A stretch of DNA of 64,000 bases, taken from assembly GCA_950097015.1 (NCBI GenBank), contig CATNEN010000039.1, forward strand, positions 4,402,001-4,466,000. Reading direction: 5' to 3'. The DNA is from Macrostomum hystrix. Taxonomy: Eukaryota; Animalia; Platyhelminthes. Both the position numbers and the translations under genes were made by a program. Below, one piece after another: positions 4,440 to 36,864 of the stretch (positions are counted from its first letter, which is position 1; each line of letters begins with the position of its first letter). Below the pieces are notes generated by a model. It was not told where the DNA came from, did not search any database, and saw only the letters and a list, made by a program, of their open reading frames with translations.

Positions 4440-5048
4440 CTTCTCGATTTCACTGCTATATTTTACGGTAGCTCGCCCATCAAAAACATCTCTTGCCCTC
4501 GATCTCTAACTTTATCGCAAAACCTGTCTATCTATTCTGTCACAATTTCTGAGTACGATACGAGTTTTATCGTTGCAACTTCTGTCTAAAATACACTATT
4601 TGTTGCATTCATTCGTTTTCTGATTGTAGGTCATATTTCTAGTTCTGATTTTATTTCATGGATATAAAAAAGCAATCAAATGAGCTAAAGAAATGAGCTC
4701 ATGGTGATACTGATTTAGCAATAATTTTTAGCAGATTTTTAGCAGATTTTTGGCTTACGGTAATTATTGTCCACTTATCATTTTTTAACAAACATGACGA
4801 GCATGGTTGAACAGATCATTGTGAAGCTTGCGCAGAGTATTAAAAAACCATTCAGCACAGAGAGTTATATGCTTATTAATTATTACGAGCCCGGCATGCT
4901 AGAGATTTGCAACGGAAATCAGTCAGCTTTTTTAATTCAGAGGAGACTATCAGCGCATTTTCAAAACTTTCAAAATACTGAATTTTCGAAAAAAAACTAC
5001 TAAATACTTTCAGTTCATTCAATGCCTCAATTCAATTCTTTAATAAGC

Positions 5049-5160
5049 TTCAACACATTCAACACCTTCAACACATTCAACACCTTCAACACATTCAACA
5101 CCTTCAACACATTCAACACATTGAACACATTCAACACATTCAACACATTCAACAAATTCA
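5049..5160. repeat. 9-bp tandem repeat (ttcaacacm)n in the putative mucin 3' UTR
   Basis: About 12 copies of ttcaacaca/ttcaacacc. Confidence 0.9.
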
Positions 5161-5271
5161 AAACATCAGTACATCAAATTATAACAGCGCACAAAAATTT
5201 GAATGTCAGCGTAGAGTTTACAGCGCAGGCATCAGCATCGCGAGCAGCAACATGCAGCCCAGAAAAACGGA

Positions 5272-8200
5272 TCAGAAAGGTAAAGCAGTCGTGCTTGCAC
5301 CGGCAGAAGTCATAGTTTTACGCGCAAAAGTCGTTATTGCACCCGCTGATGTCGTGATTGCACCGGCAGCAGTCGCTCTTGCACCGGCATTAGTAGTGGT
5401 TGCACCTGCAGCAGTCGTGATTCCACTCGAAGCAGTCGTGGTTGCACCGGCAGCAGTCCTGGTTGCACCGGCAGCAGTCGTGGTTGTACCCACAACAGTC
5501 GTAGTTAAAACTGCGGCAGTCGTGATTTTATCCGCATCAGTTTTGGTTGCACTCGCTGTAGTCGTGGTTGCAGCTGCAGCAGTCGTTGTTATTGGAATGC
5601 AATCAGTTTTGTCTGCGTTTGGTGTACACTCAAAAACTTCGTGCGACCTGTACCATCCAGCTGGGAAGACCTGATAAGAGCGTAGCTTTTCAGTGATGGT
5701 AGTTTCGCATCCGATTTCGGTCAATATAAACTGTGAGCTAATATTTTTGCCTGCATTCATATAAGCTTTCAGCATTTGACACTTCTCTGTAGGAGGACAA
5801 AAAATTAAAGCTGCGGTCGTTGAATTTATGTTACGTTCACCCTTGTCACTATTGTGCTTGAAGTACAGGCATTCTACTAGATTATCGGTCATTTTTAATA
5901 AACTCTCTTTATTGCAGTCATCACCGGTGCAGTCTTTGCAATATTTCGAATCCTCCGTTGCGTGACAGGCGCCGCAACCATATTCCAGTCTCTGAAAAGA
6001 GTTTCCGCTTGCAAAATGAAGCTTCACGAATTGGAATTTATAAGCTAATTAAATTACTTTTACTTCATTCAGTCGCTTACCACTTCGCCGCATGGAGAAT
6101 ATTTCGCTTTACACTTGGTGACATTGATTCTACAATGGGTAGAATTATTGTCATTCTTATACGTAGCAACAGATTGTTTTCCAATCGCCGAGATACATCG
6201 CCGAGATGCACCAGGAGCAGTCGTGGTTGTTCCGGCAGCAGTCATGGTTGCACCGGCATTAGTCGTGGTTGCACCGGCAGCAGTCGTGCTTCCACCCGCA
6301 GCAGTCGTGGTTGCACCGGCAGCAGTCGTGACTTCACCCGCTGATGTCGTGATTGCACCGGCAGCAGTCGTGTTTGCACCTGCAGCAGTCGTGGTTGCAC
6401 CTGCAGCAGTCGTGTTTGCACCTGCAGCAGTCGTGGTTGCACCTGCAGCAGTCGTGATTCCACTCGAAGCAGTCGTATTTGCACAAGCAGCATTTGTAGT
6501 TGTATCCGCAGCAGTCGTGATTTCACCCGCTGATGTCGTCATTGCACCGGCAGCAGTCGTGGTTGTACCAGCATTAGTCGTGGTTGCACCTGCAGCAGTC
6601 GTGGTTGCACCGGCAGCAGTCGTGGTTGCACCTGCACCAGTCGTGGTTAAACCGGCATTAGTCGTTGTTGCACCTACAGCAGTCGTGTTTCCACTCGAAG
6701 AAGTCGTGGTTGCACCGGCAGCAGTCGTGGTTGCACCGGCAGCAGTCGTGGTTGCACCGGCAGCAGTCGTTGTTGCACCGGCAGCAGTCGTGGTTGCACC
6801 GGCAGCAGTCGTGGTTGCACCGGCAGCAGTCGTTGTTGCACCGGCAGCACTCGTGGTTGCACTTTCAGCACTCGTAGTTGCACCGGAAGCAGTCGTGACT
6901 TCACCCGCTGATGTCGTGATTGCACCGCCAGCAGTCGTGGTTGCACCTGCAGCAGTCGTGGTTACACCGGCATTTGTCGTGGTTGCACCTGCAGCAGTCA
7001 TGATTCCACTCGAAGCTGTCGTGCTTGCACCGGCAGCATTTCTAGTTGTATCCGCAGCAGTCGTGATTGCACTGGCAGCAGTCGTGACTTCACCCGCTGA
7101 TGTCGTGATTGAAACGGCAGCAGTCGTGGTTGCACCTGCAGCAGTCTTTGTTACACCGGCATTAGTCGTGGTTGCACCTGCAGCAGTCTTGGTTGCACCG
7201 GCATAAGTTGTGGTTGCACTGGCAGCAGTCGTGACTTCACCCGCTGATGTCGTGATTGAAACGGCAGCAGTCGTGGTTGCACCTGCAGCAGTCTTTGTTA
7301 CACCGGCATTAGTCGTGGTTGCACCTGCAGCAGTCTTGGTTGCACCGTCATAAGTTGTGGTTGCACCTGCAGCAGTCGTGGTTAAAGCGGCATTAGTCGT
7401 TGTTGCACCTGCAGCAGTCGTGATTCCAATCGAAGAAGTCGTGGTTGCACCGGCAGCAGTCGTGGTTGAACCTGCAGCAGTCGTGATTCCACTCGAAGCA
7501 GTCGTGGTTGCACCGGCAGCAGTCGTGCTTGCAACAGCAGCAGTCGTGGTTGCACCGGCAGCAGTTGTGACTTCACCCGCTGAAGTCGTGATTGCACCGG
7601 CAGCAGACGTGGTTACACCTGCAGCAGTCGTGGTTAAACCGGCATTAGTCGTGGTTGCACCTGCAGCAGTCGTGGTTGAACCTGCAGCAGTCGTGATTCC
7701 ACTCGAAGCAGTCTTGGTTGCACCGGCAGCAGTCGTGGTTGCACCAGCAGCAGTCGTGGTTGCACCGGCAGCAGTCGTGACTTCACCCACTGAAGTCGTG
7801 ATTATACCGGCAGCAAACGTGGTTGCATCAGCAGCAGTCGTGATTGCACCGGCAGCAGTCGTCACTTCACCCGCTGAAGTCGTGATTGCACCGGCAGCAG
7901 ACATGGTTGCACCTGCAACAGTCGTGGTTAAACCGGCATTAGTCGTGGTTACACCTGCAGCAGTCGTGGTTGAACCTGAAGCAGTCGTGATTCCACTCGA
8001 AGCAGTCGTGGTTGCACCGGCAGCAGTCGTGGTTAAAATGGCATTAGTCGTCGTTGCACCTGCAGCAGTCGTGGTTGAACCTGAAGCAGTCGTGATTCCA
8101 CTCGAAGCAGTCGTGGTTGCACCGGCAGCAGTCGTGGTTGAACCTGCAGTAGTCGTGATTACACTCGAAGCAGTCTTGGTTGAACCTTCAGCAGTCGTGA

Positions 8201-11200
8201 TTCCACTCGAAGCAGTCGTGACTTCACCCGCTGAAGTCGTGATTGCACCGGCAGCAGTCGTGGTTGCACCGGCAGCAGTCGTGGTTGCACCAGCGGCAGT
8301 CGTGGTTGCACCGGCAGCAGTCGTGACTTCACCCGCTGAAGTCGTGATTATACCGGCAGCAAACGTGGTTGCAACAACAGCAGTCGTGATTGCACCGGCA
8401 GCAGACGTGGTTGCACCTGCAGCAGTCGCGGTAAAACCGGCATTAGTCGTGGTTGCACCTGAAGCAGTCGTGGTTGAACCTGCACCAGTCGTGATTCCAC
8501 TCGAAGCAGTCGTGGTTGCACCGGCAGCAGTCGTGGTTGCACCAGCAGCAGTCGTGGTTGCACCGGCAGCAGTCGTGACTTCACCCGCTGATGTCGTGAT
8601 TGCACCGGCAGCAGTCGTGGTTGCACCGGCATAAGTTGTGGTTGCACCTGCAGCTGTCGTGGTTGAACCTGCAGCAGTCGTGATTCCACTCGAAGCAGTC
8701 GTGGTTGCACCGGCAGCAGTCGTGGTTGCACCAGCAGCAGTCGTGGTTGCACCGGCAGCAGACGTGGTTGCACCTGCAGCAGTCGTGGTTAAACCGGCAT
8801 TAGTCGTTGTTGCACCTGCAGCAGTCGTGATTCCACTCGAAGAAGTCGTGGTTGCACCGGCAGCAGTCGTGGTTGAACCTGCAGCAGTCGTGATTCCACT
8901 CAAAGCAGTCGTGGTTGCACCGGCAGCAGTCGTGGTTGCACCAGCAGCAGTCGTGGTTGCACCGGCAGCAGTCATGGCTTCACCCGCTGAAGTCGTGATT
9001 GCACCGGCAGCAGTCGTGGTTAAACCGGCATTAGTCGTTGTTGCACCTGCAGCAGTCGTGATTCCACTCAAAGAAGTCGTGGTTGCACCGGCAGCAGTCG
9101 TGGTTGAACCTGCAGCAGTCGTGATTCCACTCGAAGCAGTCGTGGTTGCACCGGCAGCAGTCGTGGTTGCACCAGCAGCAGTCGTGGTTGCACCGGCAGC
9201 AGTCATGGCTTCACCCGCTGAAGTCGTGATTGCACCGGCAGCAGACGTGGTTGCACCTGCAGCAGTCGTGGTTAAACCGGCATTAGTCGTGGTTGCACCT
9301 GCAGCAGTCGTGGTTGAACCTGCATCAGTCGTGATTCCACTCGAAGCAGTCGTGGTTGCACCGGAAGCAGTCGTGCTTGCAACAGCAGCAGTCGTGGTTG
9401 CACCGGCAGCAGTTGTGACTTCACCCGCTAAAGTCGTGATTGCACCGGCAGCAGACGTGGTTACACCTGCAGCAGTCGTGGTTAAACCGGCATTAGTCGT
9501 GGTTGCACCTGCAGCAGTCGTGGTTGAACCTGCAGCAGTCGTGATTCCACTCGAAGCAGTCTTGGTTGCACCGGCAGCAGTCGTGGTTGCACCAGCAGCA
9601 GTCGTGGTTGCACCGGCAGCAGTCGTGACTTCACCCACTGAAGTCGTGATTATACCGGCAGCAAACGTGGTTGCACCAGCAGCAGTCGTGATTGCACCGG
9701 CAGCAGTCGTGACTTCACCCGCTGAAGTTGTGATTGCACCGGCAGCAGACGTAGTTGCACCGGCAGCAGTCGTGGTTAAACCGGCATTAGTCGTGGTTGC
9801 ACCTGCAGCAGTCGTGGATAAACCGGCATTAGTCGTGGTTGCACCTGCAGCAGTCGTGGTTGAACCTGAAGCAGTCGTGATTCCACTCGAAGCAGTCGTG
9901 GTTGCACCGGCAGCAGTCGTGGTTGAACCTGCAGTAGTCGTGATTACACTCGAAGCAGTCGTGGTTGCACCGGCAGCAGTCTTGGTTGAACCTTCAGCAG
10001 TCGTGATTCCACTCGAAGCAGTCGTGACTTCACCCGCTGAAGTCGTGATTGCACCGGCAGCAGTCGTGGTTGCACCGGCAGCAGTCGTGGTTGCACCAGC
10101 GGCAGTCGTGGTTGCACCGGCAGCAGTCGTGACTTCACCCGCTGAAGTCGTGATTATACCGGCAGCAGACGTGATTGCACCAGCAGCAGTCGTGGTTGCA
10201 CCGGCAGCAGTCGCGACTTCACCCGCTGAAGTCGTGATTGCACCGGCAGCAGTCGTGGTTGCACCGGCAGCAGTCGTGACTTCACCCGCTGATGTCGTGA
10301 TTATACCGGCAGCAGACGTGATTGCACCAGCAGCAGTCGTGGTTGCACCGGCAGCAGTCGCGACTTCACCCGCTGAAGTCGTGATTGCACCGGCAGCAGA
10401 CGTTGTTGCGTCGGCAGCAGTCGTGGTTAAACCGGCATTAGTCGTGGTTGCACCTGCAGCAGTCGTGGTTGAACCTGCAGCAGTCGTGATTCCACTCGAA
10501 GCAGTCTTGGTTGCACCGGCAGCAGTCGTGACTTCACCCGCTGAAGTCGTGATTGCACCGGCAGCAGACGTGGTTGCACCTGCAGCAGTCGTGGTTAAAC
10601 CGGCATTAGTCGTGGTTGCACCTGCAGCAGTCGTGGTTAAACCGGCATTAGTCGTGGTTGCACCTGAAGCAGTCGTGATTCCACTCGAAGCAGTCGTGGT
10701 TGCACCGGCAGCAGTCGTGCTTAAAATGGCATTAGTCGTCGTTGCACCTGCAGCAGTCGTGGTTGAACCTGAAGCAGTCGTGATTCCACTCGAAGCAGTC
10801 GTGGTTGCACCGGCAGCAGTCGTGGTTAAAATGGCATTAGTCGTCGTTGCACCGGCAGCAGTCGTGACTTCACCCACTGAAGTCGTGATTATACCGGCAG
10901 CAAACGTGGTTGCACCAGCAGCAGTCGTGATTGCACCGGCAGCAGTCGTCACTTCACCCGCTGAAGTCGTGATTGCACCGGCAGCAGACGTGGTTGCACC
11001 TGCAACAGTCGTGGTTAAACCGGCATTAGTCGTGGTTGCACCTGCAGCAGTCGTGGTTGAACCTGAAGCAGTCGTGATTCCACTCGAAGCAGTCGTGGTT
11101 GCACCGGCAGCAGTCGTGGTTAAAATGGCATTAGTCGTCGTTGCACCTGCAGCAGTCGTGGTTGAACCTGAAGCAGTCGTGATTCCACTCGAAGCAGTCG

Positions 11201-14200
11201 TGGTTGCACCGGCAGCAGTCGTGGTTGAACCTGCAGTAGTCGTGATTACACTCGAAGCAGTCGTGGTTGCACCGGCAGCAGTCTTGGTTGAACCTTCAGC
11301 AGTCGTGATTCCACTCGAAGCAGTCGTGACTTCACCCGCTGAAGTCGTGATTGCACCGGCAGCAGTCGTGGTTGCACCGGCAGCAGTCGTGGTTGCACCA
11401 GCGGCAGTCGTGGTTGCACCGGCAGCAGTCGTGACTTCACCCGCTGAAGTCGTGATTGCACCGGCAGCAGACGTTGTTGCGTCGGCAGCAGTCGTGGTTA
11501 AACCGGCATTAGTCGTGGTTGCACCTGCAGCAGTCGTGGTTGAACCTGCAGCAGTCGTGATTCCACTCGAAGCAGTCTTGGTTGCACCGGCAGCAGTCGT
11601 GACTTCACCCGCTGAAGTCGTGATTGCACCGGCAGCAGACGTGGTTGCACCTGCAGCAGTCGTGGTTAAACCGGCATTAGTCGTGGTTGCACCTGCAGCA
11701 GTCGTGGTTAAACCGGCATTAGTCGTGGTTGCACCTGAAGCAGTCGTGATTCCACTCGAAGCAGTCGTGGTTGCACCGGCAGCAGTCGTGCTTAAAATGG
11801 CATTAGTCGTCGTTGCACCTGCAGCAGTCGTGGTTGAACCTGAAGCAGTCGTGATTCCACTCGAAGCAGTCGTGGTTGCACCGGCAGCAGTCGTGGTTAA
11901 AATGGCATTAGTCGTCGTTGCACCGGCAGCAGTCGTGACTTCACCCACTGAAGTCGTGATTATACCGGCAGCAAACGTGGTTGCACCAGCAGCAGTCGTG
12001 ATTGCACCGGCAGCAGTCGTCACTTCACCCGCTGAAGTCGTGATTGCACCGGCAGCAGACGTGGTTGCACCTGCAACAGTCGTGGTTAAACCGGCATTAG
12101 TCGTGGTTGCACCTGCAGCAGTCGTGGTTGAACCTGAAGCAGTCGTGATTCCACTCGAAGCAGTCGTGGTTGCACCGGCAGCAGTCGTGGTTAAAATGGC
12201 ATTAGTCGTCGTTGCACCTGCAGCAGTCGTGGTTGAACCTGAAGCAGTCGTGATTCCACTCGAAGCAGTCGTGGTTGCACCGGCAGCAGTCGTGGTTGAA
12301 CCTGCAGTAGTCGTGATTACACTCGAAGCAGTCGTGGTTGCACCGGCAGCAGTCTTGGTTGAACCTTCAGCAGTCGTGATTCCACTCGAAGCAGTCGTGA
12401 CTTCACCCGCTGAAGTCGTGATTGCACCGGCAGCAGTCGTGGTTGCACCGGCAGCAGTCGTGGTTGCACCAGCGGCAGTCGTGGTTGCACCGGCAGCAGT
12501 CGTGACTTCACCCGCTGAAGTCGTGATTATACCGGCAGCAAACGTGGTTGCAACAACAGCAGTCGTGATTGCACCGGCAGCAGACGTGGTTGCACCTGCA
12601 GCAGTCGCAGTAAAACCGGCATTAGTCGTGGTTGCACCTGAAGCAGTCGTGGTTGAACCTGCACCAGTCGTGATTCCACTCGAAGCAGTCGTGGTTGCAC
12701 CGGCAGCAGTCGTGGTTGCACCAGCAGCAGTCGTGGTTGCACCGGCAGCAGTCGTGACTTCACCCGCTGATGTCGTGATTGCACCGGCAGCAGTCGTGGT
12801 TGCACCGGCATAAGTTGTGGTTGCACCTGCAGCTGTCGTGGTTGAACCTGCAGCAGTCGTGATTCCACTCGAAGCAGTCGTGGTTGCACCGGCAGCAGTC
12901 GTGGTTGCACCAGCAGCAGTCGTGGTTGCACCGGCAGCAGTCATGGCTTCACCCGCTGAAGTCGTGATTGCACCGGCAGCAGACGTGGTTGCACCTGCAG
13001 CAGTCGTGGTTAAACCGGCATTAGTCGTTGTTGCACCTGCAGCAGTCGTGATTCCACTCGAAGAAGTCGTGGTTGCACCGGCAGCAGTCGTGGTTGAACC
13101 TGCAGCAGTCGTGATTCCACTCAAAGCAGTCGTGGTTGCACCGGCAGCAGTCGTGGTTGCACCAGCAGCAGTCGTGGTTGCACCGGCAGCAGTCATGGCT
13201 TCACCCGCTGAAGTCGTGATTGCACCGGCAGCAGACGTGGTTGCACCTGCAGCAGTCGTGGTTAAACCGGCATTAGTCGTTGTTGCACCTGCAGCAGTCG
13301 TGATCCCACTCAAAGAAGTCGTGGTTGCACCGGCAACAGAGGTGGTTGCACCTGCAGCAGTCGTGGTTAAACCGGCATTTGTCGTGGTTGCACCTGCAGC
13401 AGTCGTGGTTGAACCTGCAGCATTCGTGATTCCACTCGAAGCAGTCTTGGTTGCACCGGAAGCAGTCGTGGTTGCACGAGCAGCAGTCGTGGTTGCACCG
13501 GAAGCAGTCGTGACTTCACCCACTGAAGTCGTGATTATACTGGCAGCAAACGTGGTTGCACCAGCAGCAGTCGTGATTGCACCGGCAGCAGTCGTGACTT
13601 CACCCGCTGAAGTCGTGATTGCACCGGCAGCAGTCGTGGTTGCACCGGCAGCAGTCGTGACTTCGCCCGCTGATGTCGTGATTGCACCGGCAGCAGTCGT
13701 GATTACACCGGAATTTGTCGTGGTTGCACCTGCAGCAGTCGTGGTTGCACCTGCATTAGTCGTAATTGCACCTGCAGCAGTCGTGGTTAAACCTGCAGCA
13801 GTCGTGATTCCACTCGAAGCAGTCGTGGTTGCACCTGCATTAGTCGTAATTGCACCTGCAGCAGTCGTGGTTAAACCTGCAGCAGTCGTGACTTCACCCG
13901 CTGATGTCGTGATTGCACCGGCAGCAGTCGTGGTTGCACCTGCATTAGTCGTAATTGCACCTGCAGCAGTCGTGGTTAAACCTGCAGCAGTCGTGATTCC
14001 ACTCGAAGCAGTCGTGGTTGCACCTGCATTAGTCGTAATTGCACCTGCAGCAGTCGTGGTTAAACCTGCAGCAGTCGTGACTTCACCCGCTGATGTCGTG
14101 ATTGCACCGGCAGCAGTCGTGGTTGCACCGGCATAAGTTGTGGTTGCACCTGCAGCTGTCGTGGTTGAACCTGCAGCAGTCGTGATTCCACTCGAAGCAG

Positions 14201-17200
14201 TCGTGGTTGCACCGGCAGCAGTCGTGGTTGCACCAGCAGCAGTCGTGGTTGCACCGGCAGCAGTCATGGCTTCACCCGCTGAAGTCGTGATTGCACCGGC
14301 AGCAGACGTGGTTGCACCTGCAGCAGTCGTGGTTAAACCGGCATTAGTCGTTGTTGCACCTGCAGCAGTCGTGATTCCACTCGAAGAAGTCGTGGTTGCA
14401 CCGGCAGCAGTCGTGGTTGAACCTGCAGCAGTCGTGATTCCACTCAAAGCAGTCGTGGTTGCACCGGCAGCAGTCGTGGTTGCACCAGCAGCAGTCGTGA
14501 TTGCACCGGCAGCAGTCGTGACTTCACCCGCTGAAGTCGTGATTGCACCGGCAGCAGACATGGTTGCACCTGCAGCAGTCGTGGTTAAACCGGCATTAGT
14601 CGTGGTTGCACCTGCAGCAGTCGTGGTTGAACCTGAAGCAGTCGTGATTCCACTCGAAGCAGTCGTGGTTGCACCGGCAGCAGTCGTGGTTAAAATGGCA
14701 TTAGTCGTCGTTGCACCTGCAGCAGTCGTGGTTGAACCTGAAGCAGTCGTGATTCCACTCGAAGCAGTCGTGGTTGCACCGGCAGCAGTCGTGGTTGAAC
14801 CTGCAGTAGTCGTGATTACACTCGAAGCAGTCGTGGTTGCACCGGCAGCAGTCTTGGTTGAACCTTCAGCAGTCGTGATTCCACTCGAAGCAGTCGTGAC
14901 TTCACCCGCTGAAGTCGTGATTGCACCGGCAGCAGTCGTGGTTGCACCGGCAGCAGTCGTGGTTGCACCAGCGGCAGTCGTGGTTGCACCGGCAGCAGTC
15001 GTGACTTCACCCGCTGAAGTCGTGATTATACCGGCAGCAAACGTGGTTGCAACAACAGCAGTCGTGATTGCACCGGCAGCAGACGTGGTTGCACCTGCAG
15101 CAGTCGCAGTAAAACCGGCATTAGTCGTGGTTGCACCTGAAGCAGTCGTGGTTGAACCTGCACCAGTCGTGATTCCACTCGAAGCAGTCGTGGTTGCACC
15201 GGCAGCAGTCGTGGTTGCACCAGCAGCAGTCGTGGTTGCACCGGCAGCAGTCGTGACTTCACCCGCTGATGTCGTGATTGCACCGGCAGCAGTCGTGGTT
15301 GCACCGGCATAAGTTGTGGTTGCACCTGCAGCTGTCGTGGTTGAACCTGCAGCAGTCGTGATTCCACTCGAAGCAGTCGTGGTTGCACCGGCAGCAGTCG
15401 TGGTTGCACCAGCAGCAGTCGTGGTTGCACCGGCAGCAGTCATGGCTTCACCCGCTGAAGTCGTGATTGCACCGGCAGCAGACGTGGTTGCACCTGCAGC
15501 AGTCGTGGTTAAACCGGCATTAGTCGTTGTTGCACCTGCAGCAGTCGTGATTCCACTCGAAGAAGTCGTGGTTGCACCGGCAGCAGTCGTGGTTGAACCT
15601 GCAGCAGTCGTGATTCCACTCAAAGCAGTCGTGGTTGCACCGGCAGCAGTCGTGGTTGCACCAGCAGCAGTCGTGGTTGCACCGGCAGCAGTCATGGCTT
15701 CACCCGCTGAAGTCGTGATTGCACCGGCAGCAGACGTGGTTGCACCTGCAGCAGTCGTGGTTAAACCGGCATTAGTCGTTGTTGCACCTGCAGCAGTCGT
15801 GATCCCACTCAAAGAAGTCGTGGTTGCACCGGCAACAGAGGTGGTTGCACCTGCAGCAGTCGTGGTTAAACCGGCATTTGTCGTGGTTGCACCTGCAGCA
15901 GTCGTGGTTGAACCTGCAGCATTCGTGATTCCACTCGAAGCAGTCTTGGTTGCACCGGAAGCAGTCGTGGTTGCACGAGCAGCAGTCGTGGTTGCACCGG
16001 AAGCAGTCGTGACTTCACCCACTGAAGTCGTGATTATACTGGCAGCAAACGTGGTTGCACCAGCAGCAGTCGTGATTGCACCGGCAGCAGTCGTGACTTC
16101 ACCCGCTGAAGTCGTGATTGCACCGGCAGCAGTCGTGGTTGCACCGGCAGCAGTCGTGACTTCGCCCGCTGATGTCGTGATTGCACCGGCAGCAGTCGTG
16201 ATTACACCGGAATTTGTCGTGGTTGCACCTGCAGCAGTCGTGGTTGCACCTGCATTAGTCGTAATTGCACCTGCAGCAGTCGTGGTTAAACCTGCAGCAG
16301 TCGTGATTCCACTCGAAGCAGTCGTGGTTGCACCTGCATTAGTCGTAATTGCACCTGCAGCAGTCGTGGTTAAACCTGCAGCAGTCGTGACTTCACCCGC
16401 TGATGTCGTGATTGCACCGGCAGCAGTCGTGGTTGCACCTGCATTAGTCGTAATTGCACCTGCAGCAGTCGTGGTTAAACCTGCAGCAGTCGTGATTCCA
16501 CTCGAAGCAGTCGTGGTTGCACCTGCATTAGTCGTAATTGCACCTGCAGCAGTCGTGGTTAAACCTGCAGCAGTCGTGACTTCACCCGCTGATGTCGTGA
16601 TTGCACCGGCAGCAGTCGTGGTTGCACCGGCATAAGTTGTGGTTGCACCTGCAGCTGTCGTGGTTGAACCTGCAGCAGTCGTGATTCCACTCGAAGCAGT
16701 CGTGGTTGCACCGGCAGCAGTCGTGGTTGCACCAGCAGCAGTCGTGGTTGCACCGGCAGCAGTCATGGCTTCACCCGCTGAAGTCGTGATTGCACCGGCA
16801 GCAGACGTGGTTGCACCTGCAGCAGTCGTGGTTAAACCGGCATTAGTCGTTGTTGCACCTGCAGCAGTCGTGATTCCACTCGAAGAAGTCGTGGTTGCAC
16901 CGGCAGCAGTCGTGGTTGAACCTGCAGCAGTCGTGATTCCACTCAAAGCAGTCGTGGTTGCACCGGCAGCAGTCGTGGTTGCACCAGCAGCAGTCGTGAT
17001 TGCACCGGCAGCAGTCGTGACTTCACCCGCTGAAGTCGTGATTGCACCGGCAGCAGACATGGTTGCACCTGCAGCAGTCGTGGTTAAACCGGCATTAGTC
17101 GTTGTTGCACCTGCAGCAGTCGTGATTCCACTCGAAGAAGTCGTGGTTGCACCGGCAGCAGTCGTGGTTGAACCTGCAGCAGTCGTGATTCCACTCGAAG

Positions 17201-20200
17201 CAGTCGTGGTTGCACCGGCAGCAGTCGTGGTTGCACCAGCAGCAGTCGTGGTTGTACCGGCAGCAGTCATGGCTTCACCCGCTGAAGTCGTGATTGCACC
17301 GGCAGCAGACGTGGTTACACCTGCAGCAGTCGTGGTTAAACCGGCATTAGTCGTGGTTGCACCTGCAGCAGTCGTGGTTGAACCTGCAGCAGTCGTGATT
17401 CCACTCGAAGCAGTCGTGGTTGCACCGGCAGCAGTCGTGGTTGCACCAGCGGCAGTCGTGGTTGCACCGGCAGCAGTCGTGACTTCACCCGCTGAAGTCG
17501 TGATTATACCAGCAGCAAACGTGGTTGCAACAACAGCAGTCGTGATTGCACCGGCAGCAGTCGTGACTTCACCCGCTGAAGTCGTGATTGCACCGGCAGC
17601 AGACGTGGTTGCACCGGCAGCAGTCGTGGTTAAACCGGCATTAGTCGTGGTTGCACCTGCAGCAGTCGTGGATAAACCGGCATTAGTCGTGGTTGCACCT
17701 GCAGCAGTCGTGGTTGAACCTGAAGCAGTCGTGATTCCACTCGAAGCAGTCGTGGTTGCACCGGCAGCAGTCGTGGTTAAACCGGCATTAGTCGTGGTTG
17801 CACCTGCAGCAGTCGTGGTTGAACCTGAAGCAGTCGTGATTCCACTCGAAGCAGTCGTGGTTGCACCGGCAGCAGTCGTGGTTGAACCTGCAGTAGTCGT
17901 GATTCCACTCGAAGCAGTCGTGGTTGCACCGGCAGCAGTCGTGGTTAAAATGGCATTAGTCGTCGTTGCACCTGCAGCAGTCGTGGTTGAACCTGAAGCA
18001 GTCGTGATTCCACTCGAAGCAGTCGTGGTTGCACCGGCAGCAGTCGTGGTTGCACCGGCAGCAGTCGTGGTTGCACCGGCAGCAGTCGTGGTTGAACCTG
18101 CAGTAGTCGTGATTACACTCGAAGCAGTCGTGGTTGCACCGGCAGCAGTCTTGGTTGAACCTTCAGCAGTCGTGATTCCACTCGAAGCAGTCGTGACTTC
18201 ACCCGCTGAAGTCGTGATTGCACCGGCAGCAGTCGTGATTCCACTCAAAGAAGTCGTGGTTGCACCGGCAACAGAGGTGGTTGCACCTGCAGCAGTCGTG
18301 GTTAAACCGGCATTTGTCGTGGTTGCACCTGCAGCAGTCGTGGTTGAACCTGCAGCATTCGTGATTCCACTCGAAGCAGTCTTGGTTGCACCGGAAGCAG
18401 TCGTGGTTGCACGAGCAGCAGTCGTGGTTGCACCGGAAGCAGTCGTGACTTCACCCACTGAAGTCGTGATTATACCGGCAGCAAACGTGGTTGCACCAGC
18501 AGCAGTCGTGATTGCACCGGCAGCAGTCGTGACTTCACCCGCTGAAGTCGTGATTGCACCGGCAGCAGTCGTGACTTCGCCCGCTGATGTCGTGATTGCA
18601 CCGGCAGCAGTCGTGATTACACTGGAATTTGTCGTGGTTGCACCTGCAGCAGTCGTGGTTGCACCTGCATTAGTCGTGGTTGCACCAGCAGCAGTCATGA
18701 TTCCACTCGAAGCAGTCGTGGTTGCACCGGCAGCAGTCGTGGTTGAACCTGCAGCAGCCGTGATTCCACTCGAAGCAGTCGTGGTTGCACCGGCAGCAGT
18801 CGTGGTTGCACCAGCAGCAGTCGTGGTTGCACCGGCAGCAGTCGTGACTTCACCCGCTGATGTCGTGATTGCACCGGCAGCAGTCGTGGTTGCACCGGCA
18901 TAAGTTGTGGTTGCACCTGCAGCTGTCGTGGTTGAACCTGCAGCAGTCGTGATTCCACTCGAAGCAGTCGTGGTTGCACCGGCAGCAGTCGTGGTTGCAC
19001 CAGCAGCAGTCGTGGTTGCACCGGCAGCAGTCATGGCTTCACCCGCTGAAGTCGTGATTGCACCGGCAGCAGACGTGGTTGCACCTGCAGCAGTCGTGGT
19101 TAATCCGGCATTAGTCGTTGTTGCACCTGCAGCAGTCGTGATTCCACTCGAAGAAGTCGTGGTTGCACCGGCAGCAGTCGTGGTTGAACCTGCAGCAGTC
19201 GTGATTCCACTCAAAGCAGTCGTGGTTGCACCGGCAGCAGTCGTGGTTGCACCAGCAGCAGTCGTGGTTGCACCGGCAGCAGTCATGGCTTCACCCGCTG
19301 AAGTCGTGATTGCACCGGCAGCAGACGTGGTTGCACCTGCAGCAGTCGTGGTTAAACCGGCATTAGTCGTTGTTGCACCTGCAGCAGTCGTGATTCCACT
19401 CAAAGAAGTCGTGGTTGCACCGGCAACAGAGGTGGTTGCACCTGCAGCAGTCGTGGTTAAACCGGCATTTGTCGTGGTTGCACCTGCAGCAGTCGTGGTT
19501 GAACCTGCAGCATTCGTGATTCCACTCGAAGCAGTCTTGGTTGCACCGGAAGCAGTCGTGGTTGCACGAGCAGCAGTCGTGGTTGCACCGGAAGCAGTCG
19601 TGACTTCACCCACTGAAGTCGTGATTATACCGGCAGCAAACGTGGTTGCACCAGCAGCAGTCGTGATTGCACCGGCAGCAGTCGTGGTTGCACCGGCAGC
19701 AGTCGTGACTTCGCCCGCTGATGTCGTGATTGCACCGGCAGCAGTCGTGATTACACCGGAATTTGTCGTGGTTGCACCTGCAGCAGTCGTGGTTGCACCT
19801 GCATTAGTCGTAATTGCACCTGCAGCAGTCGTGGTTAAACCTGCAGCAGTCGTGATTCCACTCGAAGCAGTCGTGGTTGCACCTGCATTAGTCGTAATTG
19901 CACCTGCAGCAGTCGTGGTTAAACCTGCAGCAGTCGTGATTCCACTCGAAGCAGTCGTGGTTGCACCTGCATTAGTCGTGGTTGCACCTGCAGCAGTCGT
20001 GGTTGCACTTGCAGCAGTCGTGATTCCACTCGAAGCAGTCGTACTTGCACGAGCAGCATTTGTAGTTGTATCCGCAGCAGTCGTGATTTCAGCCGCTGAT
20101 GTCGTGATTGCACGAGCAGCATTTGTAGTTGTATCCGCAGCAGTCGAGACTTCACCCGCTGATGTCGTGGTTGCACCGGCAGCAGTCCTGGTTGCACCGG

Positions 20201-23200
20201 CAGCAGTCGTGGTTGTACCCACAACAGTCGTAGTTAAAACTGCGGCAGTCGTGATTTTATCCGCATCAGTTTTGGTTGCACTCGCTGTAGTCGTGGTTGC
20301 AGCTGCAGCAGTCGTTGTTATTGGAATGCAATCAGTTTTGTCTGCGTTTGGTGTACACTCAAAAACTTCGTGCGACCTGTACCATCCAGCTGGGAAGACC
20401 TGATAAGAGCGTAGCTTTTCAGTGATGGTAGTTTCGCATCCGATTTCGGTCAATATAAACTGTGAGCTAATATTTTTGCCTGCATTCATATAAGCTTTCA
20501 GCATTTGACACTTCTCTGTAGGAGGACAAAAAATTAAAGCTGCGGTCGTTGAATTTATGTTACGTTCACCCTTGTCACTATTGTGCTTGAAGTACAGGCA
20601 TTCTACTAGATTATCGGTCATTTTTAATAAACTCTCTTTATTGCAGTCATCACCGGTGCAGTCTTTGCAATATTTCGAATCCTCCGTTGCGTGACAGGCG
20701 CCGCAACCATATTCCAGTCTCTGAAAAGAGTTTCCGCTTGCAAAATGAAGCTTCACGAATTGGAATTTATAAGCTAATTACATTACTTTTACTTCATTCA
20801 GTCGCTTACCACTTCGCCGCGTAGAGAATACACCGCTTTACACTTGGTGACATTGATGCTACAATGGGTAGAATTATTGTCATTCTTATACGTAGCAACA
20901 GATTGTTTTCCAATCGCCGAGATACATCGCCGAGTTGCACCCGGAGCAGTCGTGGTTGTTCCCGCAGCAGTCGTGGTTGCATCGGCATTAGTCGTGGTTG
21001 CACCGGCAGCAGTCGTGATTCCACTCGAAGAAGTCGTGGTTGCACCGGCAGCAGTCGTGGTTAAACCTGCAGCAGTCGTGGTTGCACCGGCAGCAGTCAT
21101 GATTCCACTCGAAGCAGTTGTGCTTGCACCGGCAACATTTGTAGTTGTATCCGCAGCAGTCGTGACTACACCCGCTGATGTCGTGATTGCACCGGCAGCA
21201 GTCGTGATTCCACTCGAAGCAGTCGTGGTTGCACTTGCAGCAGTCGTGGTTGCACCGGCATTAGTCGTGGTTGCACTTGCAGCAGTCGTGGTTACACCGG
21301 TAGCAGTCGTCGTTGCACCTACAGCAGTCGTGGTTGCACCGGCATTAGTCGTGGTTGCACCTGCAGAAGTCGTGGTGAAGCCGGCATTAGTCGTGGTTGC
21401 ACTTGCAGCAGTCGTGGTTACACCTGCAGCTGTCGTCGTTGCACCTGCAGCAGTCGTGATTCCACTCGAAGCAGTCGTACTTGCACGAGCAGCATTTGTA
21501 GTTGTATCCGCAGCAGTCGTGATTTCAGCCGCTGATGTCGTGATTGCACGAGCAGCATTTGTAGTTGTATCCGCAGCAGTCGAGACTTCACCCGCTGATG
21601 TCGTGGTTGCACCGGCAGCAGTCCTGGTTGCACCGGCAGCAGTCGTGGTTGTACCCACAACAGTCGTAGTTAAAACTGCGGCAGTCGTGATTTTATCCGC
21701 ATCAGTTTTGGTTGCACTCGCTGTAGTCGTGGTTGCAGCTGCAGCAGTCGTTGTTATTGGAATGCAATCAGTTTTGTCTGCGTTTGGTGTACACTCAAAA
21801 ACTTCGTGCGACCTGTACCATCCAGCTGGGAAGACCTGATAAGAGCGTAGCTTTTCAGTGATGGTAGTTTCGCATCCGATTTCGGTCAATATAAACTGTG
21901 AGCTAATATTTTTGCCTGCATTCATATAAGCTTTCAGCATTTGACACTTCTCTGTAGGAGGACAAAAAATTAAAGCTGCGGTCGTTGAACTTATGTTACG
22001 TTCACCCTTGTCACTATTGTGCTTGAAGTACAGGCATTCTACTAGATTATCGGTCATTTTTAATAAACTCTCTTTATTGCAGTCATCACCAGTGCAGTCT
22101 TTGCAATATTTCGAATCCTCCGTTGCGTGACAGGCGCCGCAACCATATTCCAGTCTCTGAAAAGAGTTTCCGCTTGCAAAATGAAGCTTCACGAATTGGA
22201 ATTTATAAGCTAATTACATTACTTTTACTTCATTCAGTCGCTTACCACTTCGCCGCGTAGAGAATACACCGCTTTACACTTGGTGACATTGATGCTACAA
22301 TGGGTAGAATTATTGTCATTCTTATACGTAGCAACAGATTGTTTTCCAATCGCCGAGATACATCGCCGAGTTGCACCCGGAGCAGTCGTGGTTGTTCCCG
22401 CAGCAGTCGTGGTTGCACCGGCATTAGTCGTGGTTGCACTGGCAGCAGTCGTGATTCCACTCGAAGAAGTCGTGGTTGCACCGGCAGCAGTCGTGGTTAA
22501 ACCTGCAGCAGTCGTGGTTGCACCGGCATTAGTCGTGGTTGCACTGGCAGCAGTCGTGGTTGCACCGGCAGCAGTCGTGGTTGTACCCACAACAGTCGTA
22601 GTTAAAACTGCGGCAGTCGTGATTTTATCCGCATCAGTTTTGGTTGCACTCGCTGTAGTCGTGGTTGCAGCTGCAGCAGTCGTTGTTATTGGAATGCAAT
22701 CAGTTTTGTCTGCGTTTGGTGTACACTCAAAAACTTCGTGCGACCTGTACCATCCAGCTGGGAAGGCCTGATAAGAGCGTAGCTTTTCAGTGATGGTAGT
22801 TTCGCATCCGATTTCGGTCAATATAAACTGTGAGCTAATATTTTTGCCTGCATTCATATAAGCTTTCAGCATTTGACACTTCTCTGTAGGAGGACAAAAA
22901 ATTAAAGCTGCGGTCGTTGAATTTATGTTACGTTCACCCTTGTCACTATTGTGCTTGAAGTACAGGCATTCTACTAGATTATCGGTCATTTTTAATAAAC
23001 TCTCTTTATTGCAGTCATCACCGGTGCAGTCTTTGCAATATTTCGAATCCTCCGTTGCGTGACAGGCGCCGCAACCATATTCCAGTCTCTGAAAAGAGTT
23101 TCCGCTTGCAAAATGAAGCTTCACGAATTGGAATTTATAAGCTAATTACATTACTTTTACTTCATTCAGTCGCTTACCACTTCGCCGCGTAGAGAATACA

Positions 23201-23360
23201 CCGCTTTACACTTGGTGACATTGATGCTACAATGGGTAGAATTATTGTCATTCTTATACGTAGCAACAGATTGTTTTCCAATCGCCGAGATACATTTAAT
23301 ACATTCAGTTAGCTGAATGCCTCCAAGTGCAAGTAACACGCCAACAGTAGCCAGCTTCAT
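5272..23360 (-). CDS. Giant secreted mucin-like protein, about 5,910 aa, with four tandem [three-finger/Ly6-like domain + 6-Cys domain + Thr/Ala stalk] modules
   Basis: Exons (minus strand): 23360-23178, 23088-22246, 22156-20810, 20720-6081 (14,640 nt) and 5991-5272. They are joined by four 89-nt phase-0 GTAAGC...TTTTCAG introns (23177-23089, 22245-22157, 20809-20721, 6080-5992). Splicing gives a signal peptide MKLATVGVLLALGGIQLTEC and restores an 8-Cys domain ending CKDCTGDDCN (three-finger-like). Many N-X-S/T sequons. The splice model is inferred from sequence only. Confidence 0.85.
6200..20320 (-). repeat. Coding 21-bp tandem repeat (heptapeptide GATTTAA and variants), roughly 670 units, with higher-order duplications
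   Basis: Plus-strand unit gcagcagtcgtggttgcaccg. The minus frame is open throughout. Identical antisense ORFs at 12817 and 15316 show a 2,499-bp period. Confidence 0.95.
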
Positions 23361-24139
23361 AATCGTTTTGATTGCCAGCTTCGATTCCGAATGGCCCAGT
23401 TAGATTTGGTCGAGAAGCTGGCAGTTGGCAGTTGATTTGCAGTCAATTATTGATCTGTTTTTCAACGGCTGGGTAGAATCGGCTGAAATGCTTTTTCGAT
23501 CGTTGTCGGTTGTTGAATTTTATTCTTCTTTTCGGGCCGCTGCCCCTTCTAAATGCTGCTGAAAATGCAGGTCCGAGCCGGCCCAGTCTATGGCAGCGCT
23601 GGCTGACGCAGGGGCACCCGCCTTTTGTCTATGTCGAATTTCACCTCTTCTTTGCTTTTTGCCTGCTCGACTTTTCTGATATTAGCTTTTCGGTTTGTAC
23701 TATTAGAAAACTTTCTAGCTTATAGGAGTTTCTCTCTACACATTTTTTCGTTCAATTTCAAACAAACGCTCATTCAATTTCAGCAAGCTTGCAATCAAAT
23801 TCACCAATCTATTTTTAGCCAGTCAGACCAGCATCCAAATTAGGCAACCTCGCATTCGACTTCAACAAAAGACGTTCATTTTCAGCAAAGTGCACTCAAT
23901 TTCAACCGGTCACATTTTTCTTGTATTGTCTATGGCAAAAATTTGTCGCAGCGTGTGAAAAGAGTCATTCGATTTCAACAATTTGCACTCAAATTTAACA
24001 TTTTCATTGTTATTAAACAGAACTGAGCAGTTGCACAAACTGTTTACTGTTAACAAACAATCCGAGTTAGCTTTGAAAACTTGAGACGAAAAGGAAAGAA
24101 TCGATCATTGCCTCATTTTTACTCAGTCGGCACTATTCT

Positions 24140-25862: not shown

Positions 25863-27894
25863 ACCCGTGCTGTGCAAAATCAACTGGCCAACATCTTCCG
25901 AGTTGAGATCTGCCATCGTGCAGCCGCAGGTACCCGTGCCTTAGGTGGTGAGCACACAAAGCAAGAATCTGACAATGCTGGCATACTGCATCTCTGCATC
26001 ACTTGCCTCCGACACTAGTCTCCGACACTAGCCTGTACAAATTGCGGCCTACTCATTCTTTATATCCGTTCAAAGTAAGAAGGCATCGGCAACTTCAAAT
26101 TTGAAGAGGTGGCGGAGCGGTGCGGACAGACTAATGATGAGGTGAATCGGATTGCTGCATTTCTCAATATGTGAATTTGAATAATTCTTTTTTGAATTGC
26201 CTTGCCTTTTGTCGTTTTGGAACTGCATTTTGCCTATAATATAATTTTCGAAAATCAAAGATTGCGCTGTACCTATACTGCCACTTTTTGTAAGTTGTAA
26301 TTACTCATCAACGCATGTATTCGTATTCTCAATCTAATGTTTTCTGTTCCTTTTTCGCTGGCTTTTTCGTTCCCTTCATTTTCTTTATTTTTGAGCTTGT
26401 GAGACATCCCATTTTGCGGTGTCGGCCCTCGAAAGCCGAACGCCATATTGGCGTTTCTCAGCGTTCAATGCTTTGTCTGTGTGCCTGTTTCTTCTGCGCC
26501 TGTGTGCGCGTTCATTCGCTGGGCGGCTTCTGCGTCCATCGCAGCGCGCTTGACCTCTCATTGACCTCTCGTTGCTACGTTATTCATCCTCAGATACCGG
26601 TTTGATTGCTTCACTTCAATTGTGACTTGCTACAGCTTTCTCAATGCTTATTATAAAATGCTATTTGCCAATATTAATCGTTTGCTTTTTTGCTACTCAG
26701 AGTAGTGTAATTCGAATTGTGTAAAACATCCACGTACTAATTGTATTTGAACCAATCGTATATGTACCTACGATTTTTTGCATAAGCTTTCGTCGTATCA
26801 ATATAGATCGCTTCCTTTTATTTTACTACTCATAGTGGTGTATGTCGGTAAACTTAGTCAACCATGTCTATTGTTTATTTTACTCCTGCTTTGCCAATAC
26901 TAGAATCCACACTGCTCGTTGCTCAATCTTTGAAATTTTGCTCGCAGTCGCTTTCGACCCATTGACTAATGAATACCTTCGTCATTTAAAAACATCGTAG
27001 CAAATTATAATCACTCCTTATTCGCAACTTTTGCGTCCTTTGCAAGCTCTATTCCTCGACCTCAACTATTTATGGTAGAGAGGCGGGTGTGACAGTGTTC
27101 GTTTTTCGTAGCCGTATAATTCTTGAAAATACTTACTTTCTTACTTTTTATTATAATAATACATTATCCGAAATATTATGTACGGTAAACTATTTTGGTT
27201 TCTACATTTTTGTATTTTGTACTTCACTCTTCATATGTATTCACAAGCTTTCTGCGCTATATTTATTTTATTCAGTGACTAGAAAGTAGAACTTGGCTCT
27301 GAGCTTGACCCTATATTCTGATTGGTTTATTTCAGGCCAATCACAACAACACTGATTGGTGATTGGTCTAAAACACAACATAACACTACACAACAGGGGC
27401 GTAGCTAGGGGGGGGGCAAGGGGGGCCGCGGCCCCCCCAAACGGCTGGCGAACTTTGCGGCGCCTCCCCTCAGCCTCAGCCTCAGCCGCGATGGCGCCCC
27501 CCACCCGTCCTCCACAGACATACTTTTGTGGCCCCTCAAGCCATCCTCCTTGCCCTATGTACAGAGGGCCCACTGATAGGGCATCACTCCACTCACTTGC
27601 TGTGTTAGAAAATGAGGGAAGGGGTAATAAAACTGATGTGTATACTGTATAGCATAGCAGAGTGCCTTTTTGGTTTGGGGTCTGCAGGAGGAGGGGGTCG
27701 GAGGTCTGGGGAGGAGGTCTTTGTCTGTGAAGTTAGGTCTGTTATAGTATTAGCGGAGGGCTGTGGGAGGAGGAGGGGTTGGGGTTGGGGACTGCGGTTG
27801 GTTGCTTAAGTAATTTTAAAGCCACGCTAAAGCAACACTGGCTGCACATAATCTGACCGTGCTAACTTTATTCTTTAGCTGTTACACGTTATTA

Positions 27895-30800: not shown

Positions 30801-31545
30801 AAGAACTGCTGTCAGCGCTGGAGTCACTGCGAAGCGAGCAGCAGTTTCACGAGTTGTTTAGGGAAGCGCGGGCTCTCGCTCTTCAACTTGACATTGATCA
30901 GAAAATTCCTCGCCAAGGACGCCACGTTGCACGTTTTCAGACGGCGCAAGTGGCGCAGGCGCAGACGCAGCCCACCACCACTAGTGCCGAGGATCACTAC
31001 AGAACTTCTGTGTACTTTCCGGCAGTGGATGCTATAGCAGCCGACATCATGCTACGGTTCGGAGTGCCACAGCAGCGTGCCTTCAATCTCAGCTGTCTGC
31101 TGCCAGTGAACTTTGATGACTCAAAGCTGGACGCGCAGCTAACCTCTGTGCAAGAAGCAGCAGAGAAGTACTGCAGCCTGCTGACGGATCCGTTCGTTGT
31201 TGTAAAGCAGGAGTATATACTATGGCGACAACAGTGGTCAACAGTCGCTGCTGAACAACGTCCGGGTACAGCGGTACTAGCCTTGCGAGCCTGTAGGAAA
31301 GTTAAGTTTCCAAACATGTACCGCCTACTGGCTGTCTCTGCTATACTCTGCCTGTGTCGAACTGCGAGCCAGAGAGAGTATTTTCAAAGCCGAAGCAGAC
31401 ATTGACATGTTGTCGGAGCACAATGGGTGAGGGACGCTTGGAATCTCTGCTTCTACTTCAGTGTCACCGAACTGACTGCCCCACTCCAGCAGAGGTTCTG
31501 GACTTGTTTGCCACATCGGCTCGTCGATTGAAGTTGCTTCTTTAA
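27895..31545 (+). pseudogene. hAT transposase (TTF-type Zn finger, DUF4371-like region, hAT dimerisation domain), disrupted
   Basis: Motifs FPWL..GAFCTPCVLF, HEKSEYH, ALRGH, YLSPQIQNE, IVDET, CYDGA, HCMAHWLNL, CETRF and NCEPERVFS. Frameshifts near 29405, 29810 and 31350, and an in-frame TGA at 29843. Confidence 0.9.
28081..29185 (+). repeat. GC-rich 21/15-bp VNTR inside the transposase N-terminus
   Basis: Units ggcgcccttgctgccggtgac and ggcgcccttgctgct, in frame (DGALAAG / ALAAG). Confidence 0.95.
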
Positions 31546-36168: not shown

Positions 36169-36864
36169 GTGCGGTGGCGTCCCAGTGCGCAGGGCTCTCC
36201 GGTCGATATTTCTCTCCAGCCAGCCTATTTCTCTCGATATGCTGACGTTGACTGGCTGTCAGAGAGGGCAATTCTGTGTCCTAGAAATGATGCCACCAAC
36301 GAAATTAACTACCAACTGCTTCAGGAGTTGCCAGGTGCAGTTTTCACCTACAAGTCAATTGATACAACGTTGACTGATGACACCGCTGTGGAGTATCCTG
36401 TTGAGTTTCTGAACTCTCTAGATCCTCCTGGAACTCCATCGCACAACTTGCAGCTGAAAGTTGGGGCACCAATTATGCTCCTCCGCAACCTGAATGCGCC
36501 AAGGCTGTGTAACGGCACCAGACTGATAGTCAGGCGGCTCTTCCCACACGTGATTGAGGCCACGATAATGACTGGATCTGGCAGAGGAGAGTCTGTGTTC
36601 GTTCCCCGGATTCCAATTATCCCCACGGACCTGCCATTTCAGTTCAAGCGACTGCAGTTCCCTGTGAGAGTGTGCTTTGCGATGACTATTAACAAGGCTC
36701 AGGGACAGTCGCTGAAGGTGGCTGGCATCAACCTGGAGACTCCTTGCTTCTCGCATGGGCAGCTTTATGTCGCCTGCTCCCGTGTTGGAACTCCAGCTGG
36801 CCTATTCATTTTCGCACCAAGGGGAAGAACGAAGAATGTGGTGTATCCCCAGGACTTGAGGTGA
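36169..36864 (+). pseudogene. Helitron PIF1-like helicase C-terminal fragment
   Basis: WLSERAILCPRN, LKVGAPIMLLRNL..LCNGTRL, FAMTINKAQGQSL and FSHGQLYVACSRV. No Rep domain and no N-terminal helicase motifs. Confidence 0.9.

Follow-up and report, generated by a model that had tools for sequence, protein, structure and literature searches.

Introduction

In genes for Ly6/uPAR (LU) proteins, two exons encode the mature domain; the intron between them falls at the tip of loop 2, and the last exon encodes the anchor signal (PMC6600238). In human C4.4A/LYPD3, a signal peptide is followed by two LU domains, a Ser/Thr-rich, O-glycosylated mucin-type region, and a glycosylphosphatidylinositol (GPI) anchor (PMC7053344). 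In uPAR, CD177, and TEX101, the LU domains abut and no long mucin spacers are found between pairs (PMC6600238). A recent survey of invertebrate LU architectures (2026) has only LU-only and receptor-kinase types for flatworms, with no mucin-spaced type (PMC13719153). Here we describe a gene of the flatworm Macrostomum hystrix that appears to place LU-like domains on very long, Thr-rich stalks. The window, that is, the whole stretch of DNA analyzed, comprises 64,000 nucleotides (nt) of contig CATNEN010000039.1 (positions 4,402,001 to 4,466,000); the gene lies on its minus strand, and all coordinates below are those of the window. The analysis follows up an earlier, sequence-only reading of the same DNA. 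The interpretation we favor, with a probability of about 0.7, is that of an expressed and spliced gene encoding a mucin-like glycoprotein with four LU-type domain pairs on heptad stalks, probably secreted.

The predicted protein consists of a signal peptide followed by four cassettes, each comprising a Cys-rich domain A, a second Cys-rich domain B, and a stalk of TTTAAGA-type heptads. One cassette, together with the tail found in the gene's family, has the order of C4.4A/LYPD3, a likeness that the earlier reading had missed. C4.4A is also one of the top structural matches to domain B (Z 5.4), although no sequence similarity is detectable by a Pfam scan of exons 1, 2, and 5 or by a sequence profile against the PDB. 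Unlike C4.4A, the present protein has four copies of the unit in a single chain, and a stop codon interrupts its anchor signal. The stalks also differ, being 106 to 4,706 amino acids (aa) long and nearly Pro-free, against about 80 aa in C4.4A. The likeness to uPAR, CD177, and TEX101 is that these are secreted-pathway proteins with several LU domains in a row, and that they provide the best matches of domain B. The fourfold unit, stalks of up to 4,706 nearly Pro-free residues, and a stop in the anchor signal are unreported in the LU review (PMC6600238) and in the 2026 survey (PMC13719153), and no paper linking Macrostomum with LU proteins was found among those that could be searched.

The product can also be compared with giant mucins of the bead-on-a-string type, with which it shares the signal peptide and a very long Thr-rich repeat broken by small disulfide-rich domains. 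In mammalian gel-forming mucins, Cys-rich domains interrupt O-glycosylated repeats. The beads of the present protein, however, are LU-like pairs. The earlier reading had seen no vWD, SEA, or cystine-knot domain, and indeed the Pfam scan of exons 1, 2, and 5 found no vWD, C8, TIL, cystine-knot, or SEA modules, by which classical mucins are polymerized or processed. Exons 3 and 4 consist, as read, of the same cassette and of stalk repeats. By that scan the gene has neither the vWD-C8-TIL and cystine-knot set of gel-forming mucins nor the SEA domain plus transmembrane segment of membrane mucins. The Macrostomum glue proteins ap1 and ap2 have sets of vWD, TIL, C8, LDL, TSP-1, and EGF domains, and GRK or 221- to 255-aa repeats (PMC8621496). 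Identity with either was rejected on domain content, none of their domains or repeats being present.

Gene Structure

Five apparent reading frames of the minus strand read as a single gene of five exons and four introns (Table 1), with the limits that the sequence-only reading had given it. All four introns are 89 nt long, begin with GTAAGC and end with TTTTCAG, are in phase 0, and are 99 to 100% identical to each other. Each interrupts a domain of 8 or 9 Cys (domain A), and the joined reading is ...GEV/RLEYGCG... at all four places. Both the four near-identical GT-AG introns and this splice reading had been proposed from the letters, and both stand; three of the introns are identical and the fourth is one base off. 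Summed exon by exon, the product has 5,910 aa, in line with the earlier estimate of about 5,900, with a predicted mass of about 533 kDa before glycan is added. None of the five exons contains an internal stop codon. The final 45 aa of exon 4 form the N-terminal half of the cassette-4 domain A, which carries an extra Cys. This structure is not a chance pattern, because the intron position recurs in about 45 paralogues and because RNA contigs skip intron 4 (5992-6080) in all four runs considered below.

Table 1. Coordinates of the gene, its exons and introns, and adjoining features in the window.
Feature	Position	Strand	Description
Whole gene	23360-5272	minus	5 exons and 4 introns; ATG 23360-23358, TGA 5274-5272
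Exon 1, 61 aa	23178..23360	minus	Start codon, signal peptide (MKLATVGVLLALGG...), N-terminal half of domain A with 4 Cys (C-x2-C ... C-x6-C)
Intron 1	23089..23177	minus	89 nt, GT-AG, phase 0
Exon 2, 281 aa	22246..23088	minus	C-terminal half of domain A (5 Cys, CN end), domain B (6 Cys), 107-aa stalk, N-terminal half of the next A
Intron 2	22157..22245	minus	89 nt, same letters as intron 1
Exon 3, 449 aa	20810..22156	minus	Cassette as in exon 2, stalk of 275 aa
Intron 3	20721..20809	minus	89 nt, same letters as intron 1
Exon 4, 4,880 aa	6081..20720	minus	Cassette as in exon 2; stalk of 4,706 aa, 671 heptads, one register
Intron 4	5992..6080	minus	89 nt, a single base differs from introns 1-3
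Exon 5, 239 aa + TGA	5272..5991	minus	C-terminal half of domain A, domain B, 106-aa stalk, stop
Post-stop tail remnant	5218..5271	minus	17 in-frame codons (SVFLGCMLLLAMLMPAL) and TAA; the family's hydrophobic GPI-type tail
9-nt tandem repeat, 3' flank	5049..5166	minus	Also in the 3' flanks of paralogues; probable 3' untranslated region
Perfect tandem duplication of a 2,499-nt block in the exon-4 repeat	12087..17106 (approximate limits)	minus	100% identity at offset 2,499 over about 2.5 kb

Transcription and Splicing

Four small public RNA runs (X1 to X4), all from one 2020 study, were used in the form of contigs; they hold 64 to 74% of the words of 22100-23450. The contigs were compared with window positions 4900-6400. 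In each of the four runs a single contig of 720 to 816 nt covers 5435/5460-5991 and continues to 6252-6291, skipping exactly 5992-6080. The skipped segment ends in CT..AC on the plus strand, which is GT..AG in the sense of the gene, and depth over the intron is zero. The contigs read, in order, the end of a stalk, the N-terminal half of A, the splice, the C-terminal half of A, domain B, and the start of the exon-3/4 stalk (SAGEVSTAAD). In their upstream part are the ten letters diagnostic of the ends of exons 2 and 3, whereas the signal-peptide exon would differ at 56 places, and their downstream part is a perfect match to exons 4 and 5. RNA thus contains a spliced internal cassette junction. 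Since it runs from a stalk through both halves of A and through B into another stalk, it requires a multi-cassette transcript. Junction-spanning reads had been named earlier as the check on the proposed splicing, and the contigs, with exactly one 89-nt intron skipped in every run, serve in their place.

Splicing may nevertheless yield mainly short isoforms, such as an exon 1-exon 5 product of about 300 aa that resembles the ordinary members of the family, with the 5,910-aa form not being the main product. Because the splice sites are identical and in phase 0, any skipping of exons 2, 3, and 4 would keep the frame and rebuild domain A, and in the contigs, letters like those at the end of exon 2 are indeed followed, past the junction, by letters like those at the start of exons 4 and 5. 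However, a mixed contig of this kind is expected from a majority-path assembler faced with four near-identical cassettes, the telling letters being 237 nt apart and thus unphaseable; exon skipping as read from the mixed letters was rejected for this reason. In addition, words of the stalk repeat are found at high depth in the same runs, suggesting long stalk RNA, although depth is a poor measure. On balance, predominance of the short isoforms is considered unlikely.

Some properties of the RNA data limit their support for a full-length, four-cassette transcript, which would measure 17.7 kb. The contigs are majority-path assemblies in which the cassettes cannot be phased. Letters specific to the end of exon 4 are present in none of the contigs of the four runs, and 5155-5357 is without a contig in every run, so that the unique end of exon 5, the TGA, and the nearer part of the 3' flank are all missing. 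Since the contigs carry the upstream letters of other cassettes, the intron-4 junction is not specifically shown, and given the two absences just mentioned, RNA supports neither that junction nor the stop codon, the 3' end, or the full length. Filtering, a difference between strains, or another 3' end could account for the gap at 5155-5357. Farther along the 3' flank, 4900-5077 is represented in run X1, with roughly the depth that a single-copy stretch of the gene should have.

Cassettes and Stalks

The stalks of cassettes 1 to 4 have 107, 275, 4,706, and 106 aa. The sequence-only reading had found the same pattern, but its lengths (109, 277, 4,708, and 108 aa) are each two residues too high. 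All stalks are tandem repeats of 21 nt (7 aa) without insertions or deletions, and the commonest heptad of the 4,706-aa stalk is GATTTAA. The whole protein contains 32.6% Thr, 27.2% Ala, 12% Gly, 7.8% Ser, and 0.4% Pro, whereas the stalks contain 35-43% Thr, 6-8% Ser, and just 0-0.9% Pro. Two of these features speak against a mucin-like, functional stalk: Pro is almost missing, unlike in classical mucin domains, and an open frame over ACN/GCN/GGN repeats is a weak sign of constraint. A likeness to antifreeze glycoproteins was considered and put aside as one of composition alone (Thr/Ala-rich and Pro-poor); the repeat unit differs.

The Cys-coding parts of the cassettes, 557 nt each, show 0-3 differences, so that the near-identity of the Cys domains first noticed by eye is real. 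The near-identical unit extends about 265-310 nt upstream of each donor site and about 660-860 nt downstream. The number of Cys in domain A is 8 in cassettes 2 and 3, as had been claimed for all four, but 9 in cassettes 1 and 4; the ninth belongs to a CIKC start in cassette 1, and in cassette 4 it is an additional Cys in KYSPCGEV. Domain B has the 6 Cys that were read for it. The protein total is 59, an odd number. In window positions 6081-6215, the N-terminal half of domain A of cassette 4 departs from the other three (CRINVTKCKAKYSPCGEV), the extra Cys being near the presumed tip of finger 2.

Within the exon-4 repeat, identity is 100% over about 2.5 kb at an offset of 2,499 nt, against about 79% elsewhere. 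This 2,499-nt duplication is either the result of a very recent unequal crossover or an assembly effect. The latter raises the question of whether the cassette number and the stalk length are partly artifacts of long-read assembly over 14 kb of 21-nt repeats, to which the near-identity of the cassettes would also be conducive. Arguing otherwise, the repeat units are only about 79% alike and so offer many anchors for reads, the cassettes differ by fixed letters and their stalks differ, and at least one internal stalk-to-domain junction is present in RNA. Moreover, the published M. hystrix assembly (about 220 Mb) is in 42 contigs and has low k-mer multiplicity (PMC10468722). An artifact of this kind seems to us very improbable, and we retain the layout of four cassettes with stalks of the given lengths.

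Domain Identity

Across the splice, domain A reads C-x2-C-x20-C-x6-C-x15-C-x2-C-x9-C-x2-C-x4-CN. The LU consensus of 8-10 Cys, with C-x2-C, C-x5/6-C, and C-x4-CN, is found in it, except that the usual CC doublet is here C-x2-C. The intron lies 10 residues past the fourth Cys and 5 before the fifth, and is held there in all paralogues examined; these two Cys can be read as LU Cys V and VI. Domain A is thus split over two exons as LU domains are, with the intron at about the LU position, but the exon plan differs from that of LU genes in that exon 1 also holds the signal peptide and domain B is intronless. The C-terminal half of domain A alone is unfolded (predicted local distance difference test score, pLDDT, below 50) in the model that folds domain B well. 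When exons 1 and 2 were compared separately with the ESM Atlas, the nearest named neighbors were all families of the three-finger clan, with weak scores of 0.76-0.83.

Domain B, having 6 Cys and no CN, lacks the LU Cys consensus. Its AlphaFold2 model, built on an alignment of 25 paralogues, has a pLDDT of 81.8 and a predicted template modeling score of 0.72, and shows a three-finger beta fold in which a helix replaces part of finger 3. In a Foldseek search of the PDB, the top eight rows are uPAR, CD177, and GPIHBP1, with expect values (E) of 0.14-0.5. VIA-align against 48,161 chains places TEX101, CD177 (twice), and GPIHBP1 in the top four ranks (Z 5.6-4.5), and snake three-finger toxins, Lypd6b, and Lynx at lower ones. 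In a second structural comparison, mouse TEX101 (Z 6.0) is followed by C4.4A, as given above, and uPAR (Z 5.3).

On the opposite side of the balance, these structural scores are modest (Z at most 6.0, Foldseek E at least 0.14), in a range that, as the tool warns, may reflect a common arrangement. Searches by sequence add to this. The Pfam scan of exons 1, 2, and 5 gave no family at E up to 10, including PF00021 and its relatives; a paralogue profile gave only a chance-level row against PDB sequences; phmmer with the Cys region against 1.84 billion representatives returned one spurious repeat protein and no homologue; and a profile of 25 paralogues found nothing in a library of 5.8 billion clusters. 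The Pfam result is an unfair test of domain A because each exon holds half of the domain, but for domain B it is a real miss. A control reading frame from the window was likewise without a match in the library search, so the empty library searches say little about novelty. The two large protein libraries may lack Macrostomum.

Domain B can be regarded as LU-like in spite of its modest scores because the top ranks are uniformly LU proteins, and the predicted model thus suggests such an identity. For domain A, the Cys pattern, the intron position, and the weak language-model neighbors point to LU identity. In our reading both domains fold and work like LU domains, while their membership at the sequence level is unproven. 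The three-finger, Ly6/uPAR assignment that had been made from the Cys spacing fits on these grounds, by predicted fold for B and by the features just listed for A. The structural check suggested along with it, AlphaFold modeling followed by Foldseek, covers domain B only, which folds and brings LU proteins to the top. That the 6-Cys domain appears to be LU-like itself, to judge from the model, had been overlooked.

The Paralogue Family

The gene is one member of a family, about 45 strong in the M. hystrix genome, whose other genes have two exons, a single cassette, and a membrane anchor; this family had escaped the earlier reading. A search of the genome gave 47 matches to the Cys region of exon 2 and 48 to exon 1, mostly on contig 39 at 13.5-17.5 Mb, with three on contig 11; every exon-1 match has an exon-2 match next to it. 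In the paralogues examined, the exon-1 match is about 90-135 nt upstream of the exon-2 match. A simple rule for exon limits was applied to 24 paralogues that were dissected; it placed the donor correctly in 20 and too early in four. The 24 share one plan: a signal peptide and the N-terminal half of A, an intron at the same codon position, then the C-terminal half of A, B, a stalk, and a tail. Intron length is 88-135 nt in the 20 with a correctly placed donor. The stalks are rich in Thr/Pro or Thr/Ala and vary from about 10 to over 500 residues. The tails are hydrophobic; some end with this segment (GPI-like), and in others a few basic residues come after it (transmembrane). In two paralogues, L029 and L031 (contig 39, about 10.12-10.13 Mb), the rule put the start of exon 2 after AC rather than AG, and the true acceptor is probably a few bases away; their tails have a basic cytoplasmic stub (KKRKR), as in transmembrane rather than GPI-type proteins.

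Identity of the paralogues to the cassette is 37-50%, with E down to 1e-24. The gene and the family have in common the motifs YGCGAC, CKDCTG, CN, and FCPPSEKC, a Thr-rich stalk, and homologous tails and 3' flanks. By its signal peptide, intron, A/B order, stalk, motifs, and tail, the gene is a member of this double three-finger surface family. It differs from the rest of the family in three respects: it alone has internal copies of the N-terminal half of A that continue the upstream open frame, and thus more than one cassette; no other stalk comes near its longest one in length; and no other member was seen to have a stop inside the tail. A tree puts its cassette in one group with the long-stalk genes on contig 11 (support 88/93); the branch that leads to it is very long.

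The family evolves fast. Among 19 paralogues, the intron within domain A is more conserved than the adjoining Cys-coding region in every one of 171 pairs, the mean nucleotide identity being 91% for the intron and 70.6% for the coding region. The median dN/dS in the same paralogues is 0.71, and exceeds 1 in 18% of pairs. A frozen frame with fast loops is the pattern of toxin and recognition families. The idea that the intron is a hidden RNA element was dropped, as there was no Rfam match and no stable fold (z = 0.78). The signal peptide is nearly frozen among the paralogues (loci L005-L032).

The Stop Codon and Probable Loss of the Anchor

In a codon-by-codon alignment of the tails, the TGA of the gene aligns with GGA in the closest paralogues and GTA in others, thus replacing a Gly or Val codon at the start of a GPI-type tail. 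The 17 codons after it align codon for codon with the tails of L005, L006, L016, L020, and L024, and homology to the paralogues extends over the remaining tail and the 3' flank, including the 9-nt repeat. A single base change has therefore cut off an otherwise intact GPI-type signal, and the anchor seems to have been lost recently. The earlier reading had not noticed this tail. Since the TGA stands at the start of the tail, the protein is probably secreted; secretion would be its simplest consequence, and release rather than tethering probably the outcome.

The protein might still be tethered to the membrane as a giant glycocalyx mucin, if the TGA were polymorphic among strains, misassembled, or read through. 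The tail past the TGA is open, has the same end as in L016, L020, and L024, and keeps the hydrophobic pattern; the TGA is one base from the GGA of the closest relatives; and its codon is covered by no RNA contig in the four runs. But the assembly reads TGA, and a recent nonsense change would likewise leave an intact-looking tail. Nor is the TGA-TCC context, to our knowledge, a leaky one. A tethered product is accordingly held to be a minority possibility, and a secreted one is preferred.

A stop within the anchor signal would also be found in a young, decaying chimera, that is, a fusion of tandem members of the family, transcribed but now anchorless and serving no function of its own. The odd Cys number (59, including a new one in cassette 4), the very long branch in the family tree, and the fact that the repeat frames resist stops by composition are all compatible with decay. 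However, 5,910 codons, four pairs of splice sites, and every conserved Cys of eight domains are intact, and the gene is expressed and spliced in four samples. A functionless chimera is thus a rather remote prospect compared to a working gene.

Proposed Origin and Mode of Action

The gene would have started from a single-cassette, membrane-anchored member of the family that became fused in frame to a tandem copy. The joint would run from the stalk into codon 23 of exon 1, which would have removed the signal peptide and the first Cys of the downstream copy. Unequal crossing-over in the 21-nt stalk repeats could then have multiplied the cassette and grown one stalk to 4,706 aa. The TGA in the GPI-type tail would finally have turned a member of a fast-evolving surface-receptor family into a soluble component of a coat or of mucus.

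The stalks of the product would be densely O-glycosylated, stiff, and extended, in the manner of a bottle-brush. At about 0.25 nm per residue, the long stalk would measure about 1 micrometre. The four LU-domain pairs would thereby be held apart as multivalent binding knobs, a display that would suit a multivalent role in a coat, in mucus, or in cross-linking, and the odd number of Cys would leave room for an intermolecular disulfide. A more elaborate possibility, in which we would place little credence, is a hypervariable three-finger recognition system in which the protein is a multivalent arm that can be tuned. As the splice sites of the four cassettes are identical and in phase 0, exon skipping at this single locus could then set the number of pairs from 1 to 4 and the stalk at about 0.1-5 thousand residues, and read-through at the TGA could switch the protein between being shed into mucus and being GPI-tethered in the coat.

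Other Features of the Window

Short tandem repeats that are open in several frames on both strands and have a strong GC skew (GDGALAA-, SLLSHLS-, and IWDQRSGIRDLGSE-type) occupy 27859-29511, 48582-50252, and 54010-54985; these three blocks are probably satellites rather than genes. Putative mobile-element remnants, as judged from their translations, are present at 29879-31405, 36169-36864, and 43436-44180 and may represent a long hAT-type transposase reading frame, a Pif1/Helitron-like helicase fragment, and a reverse-transcriptase fragment. By eye, 42114-43250 resembles a seven-helix receptor, with no database match, 57237-59304 contains exons of a tyrosine kinase (motifs HRDLAARN and DFGLAK), and 60795-62366 encodes a C2H2 zinc-finger protein.

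Significance

LU domains are known as small binders on short tethers, and LU pairs as repeated beads on mucin stalks of micrometre scale have no report in the LU reviews or the 2026 invertebrate survey. Macrostomum is amenable to RNA interference and in situ hybridization. The locus makes it plain by what route a giant modular protein may come from a small surface-receptor gene within a species lineage, the proposed steps being in-frame fusion, cassette amplification, repeat expansion, and fresh anchor loss. Since the parent family is fast-evolving, in a pattern typical of recognition, toxin, or reproductive proteins, a multivalent, secreted descendant of it might act as a decoy, form a coat, or be a lectin of mucus.

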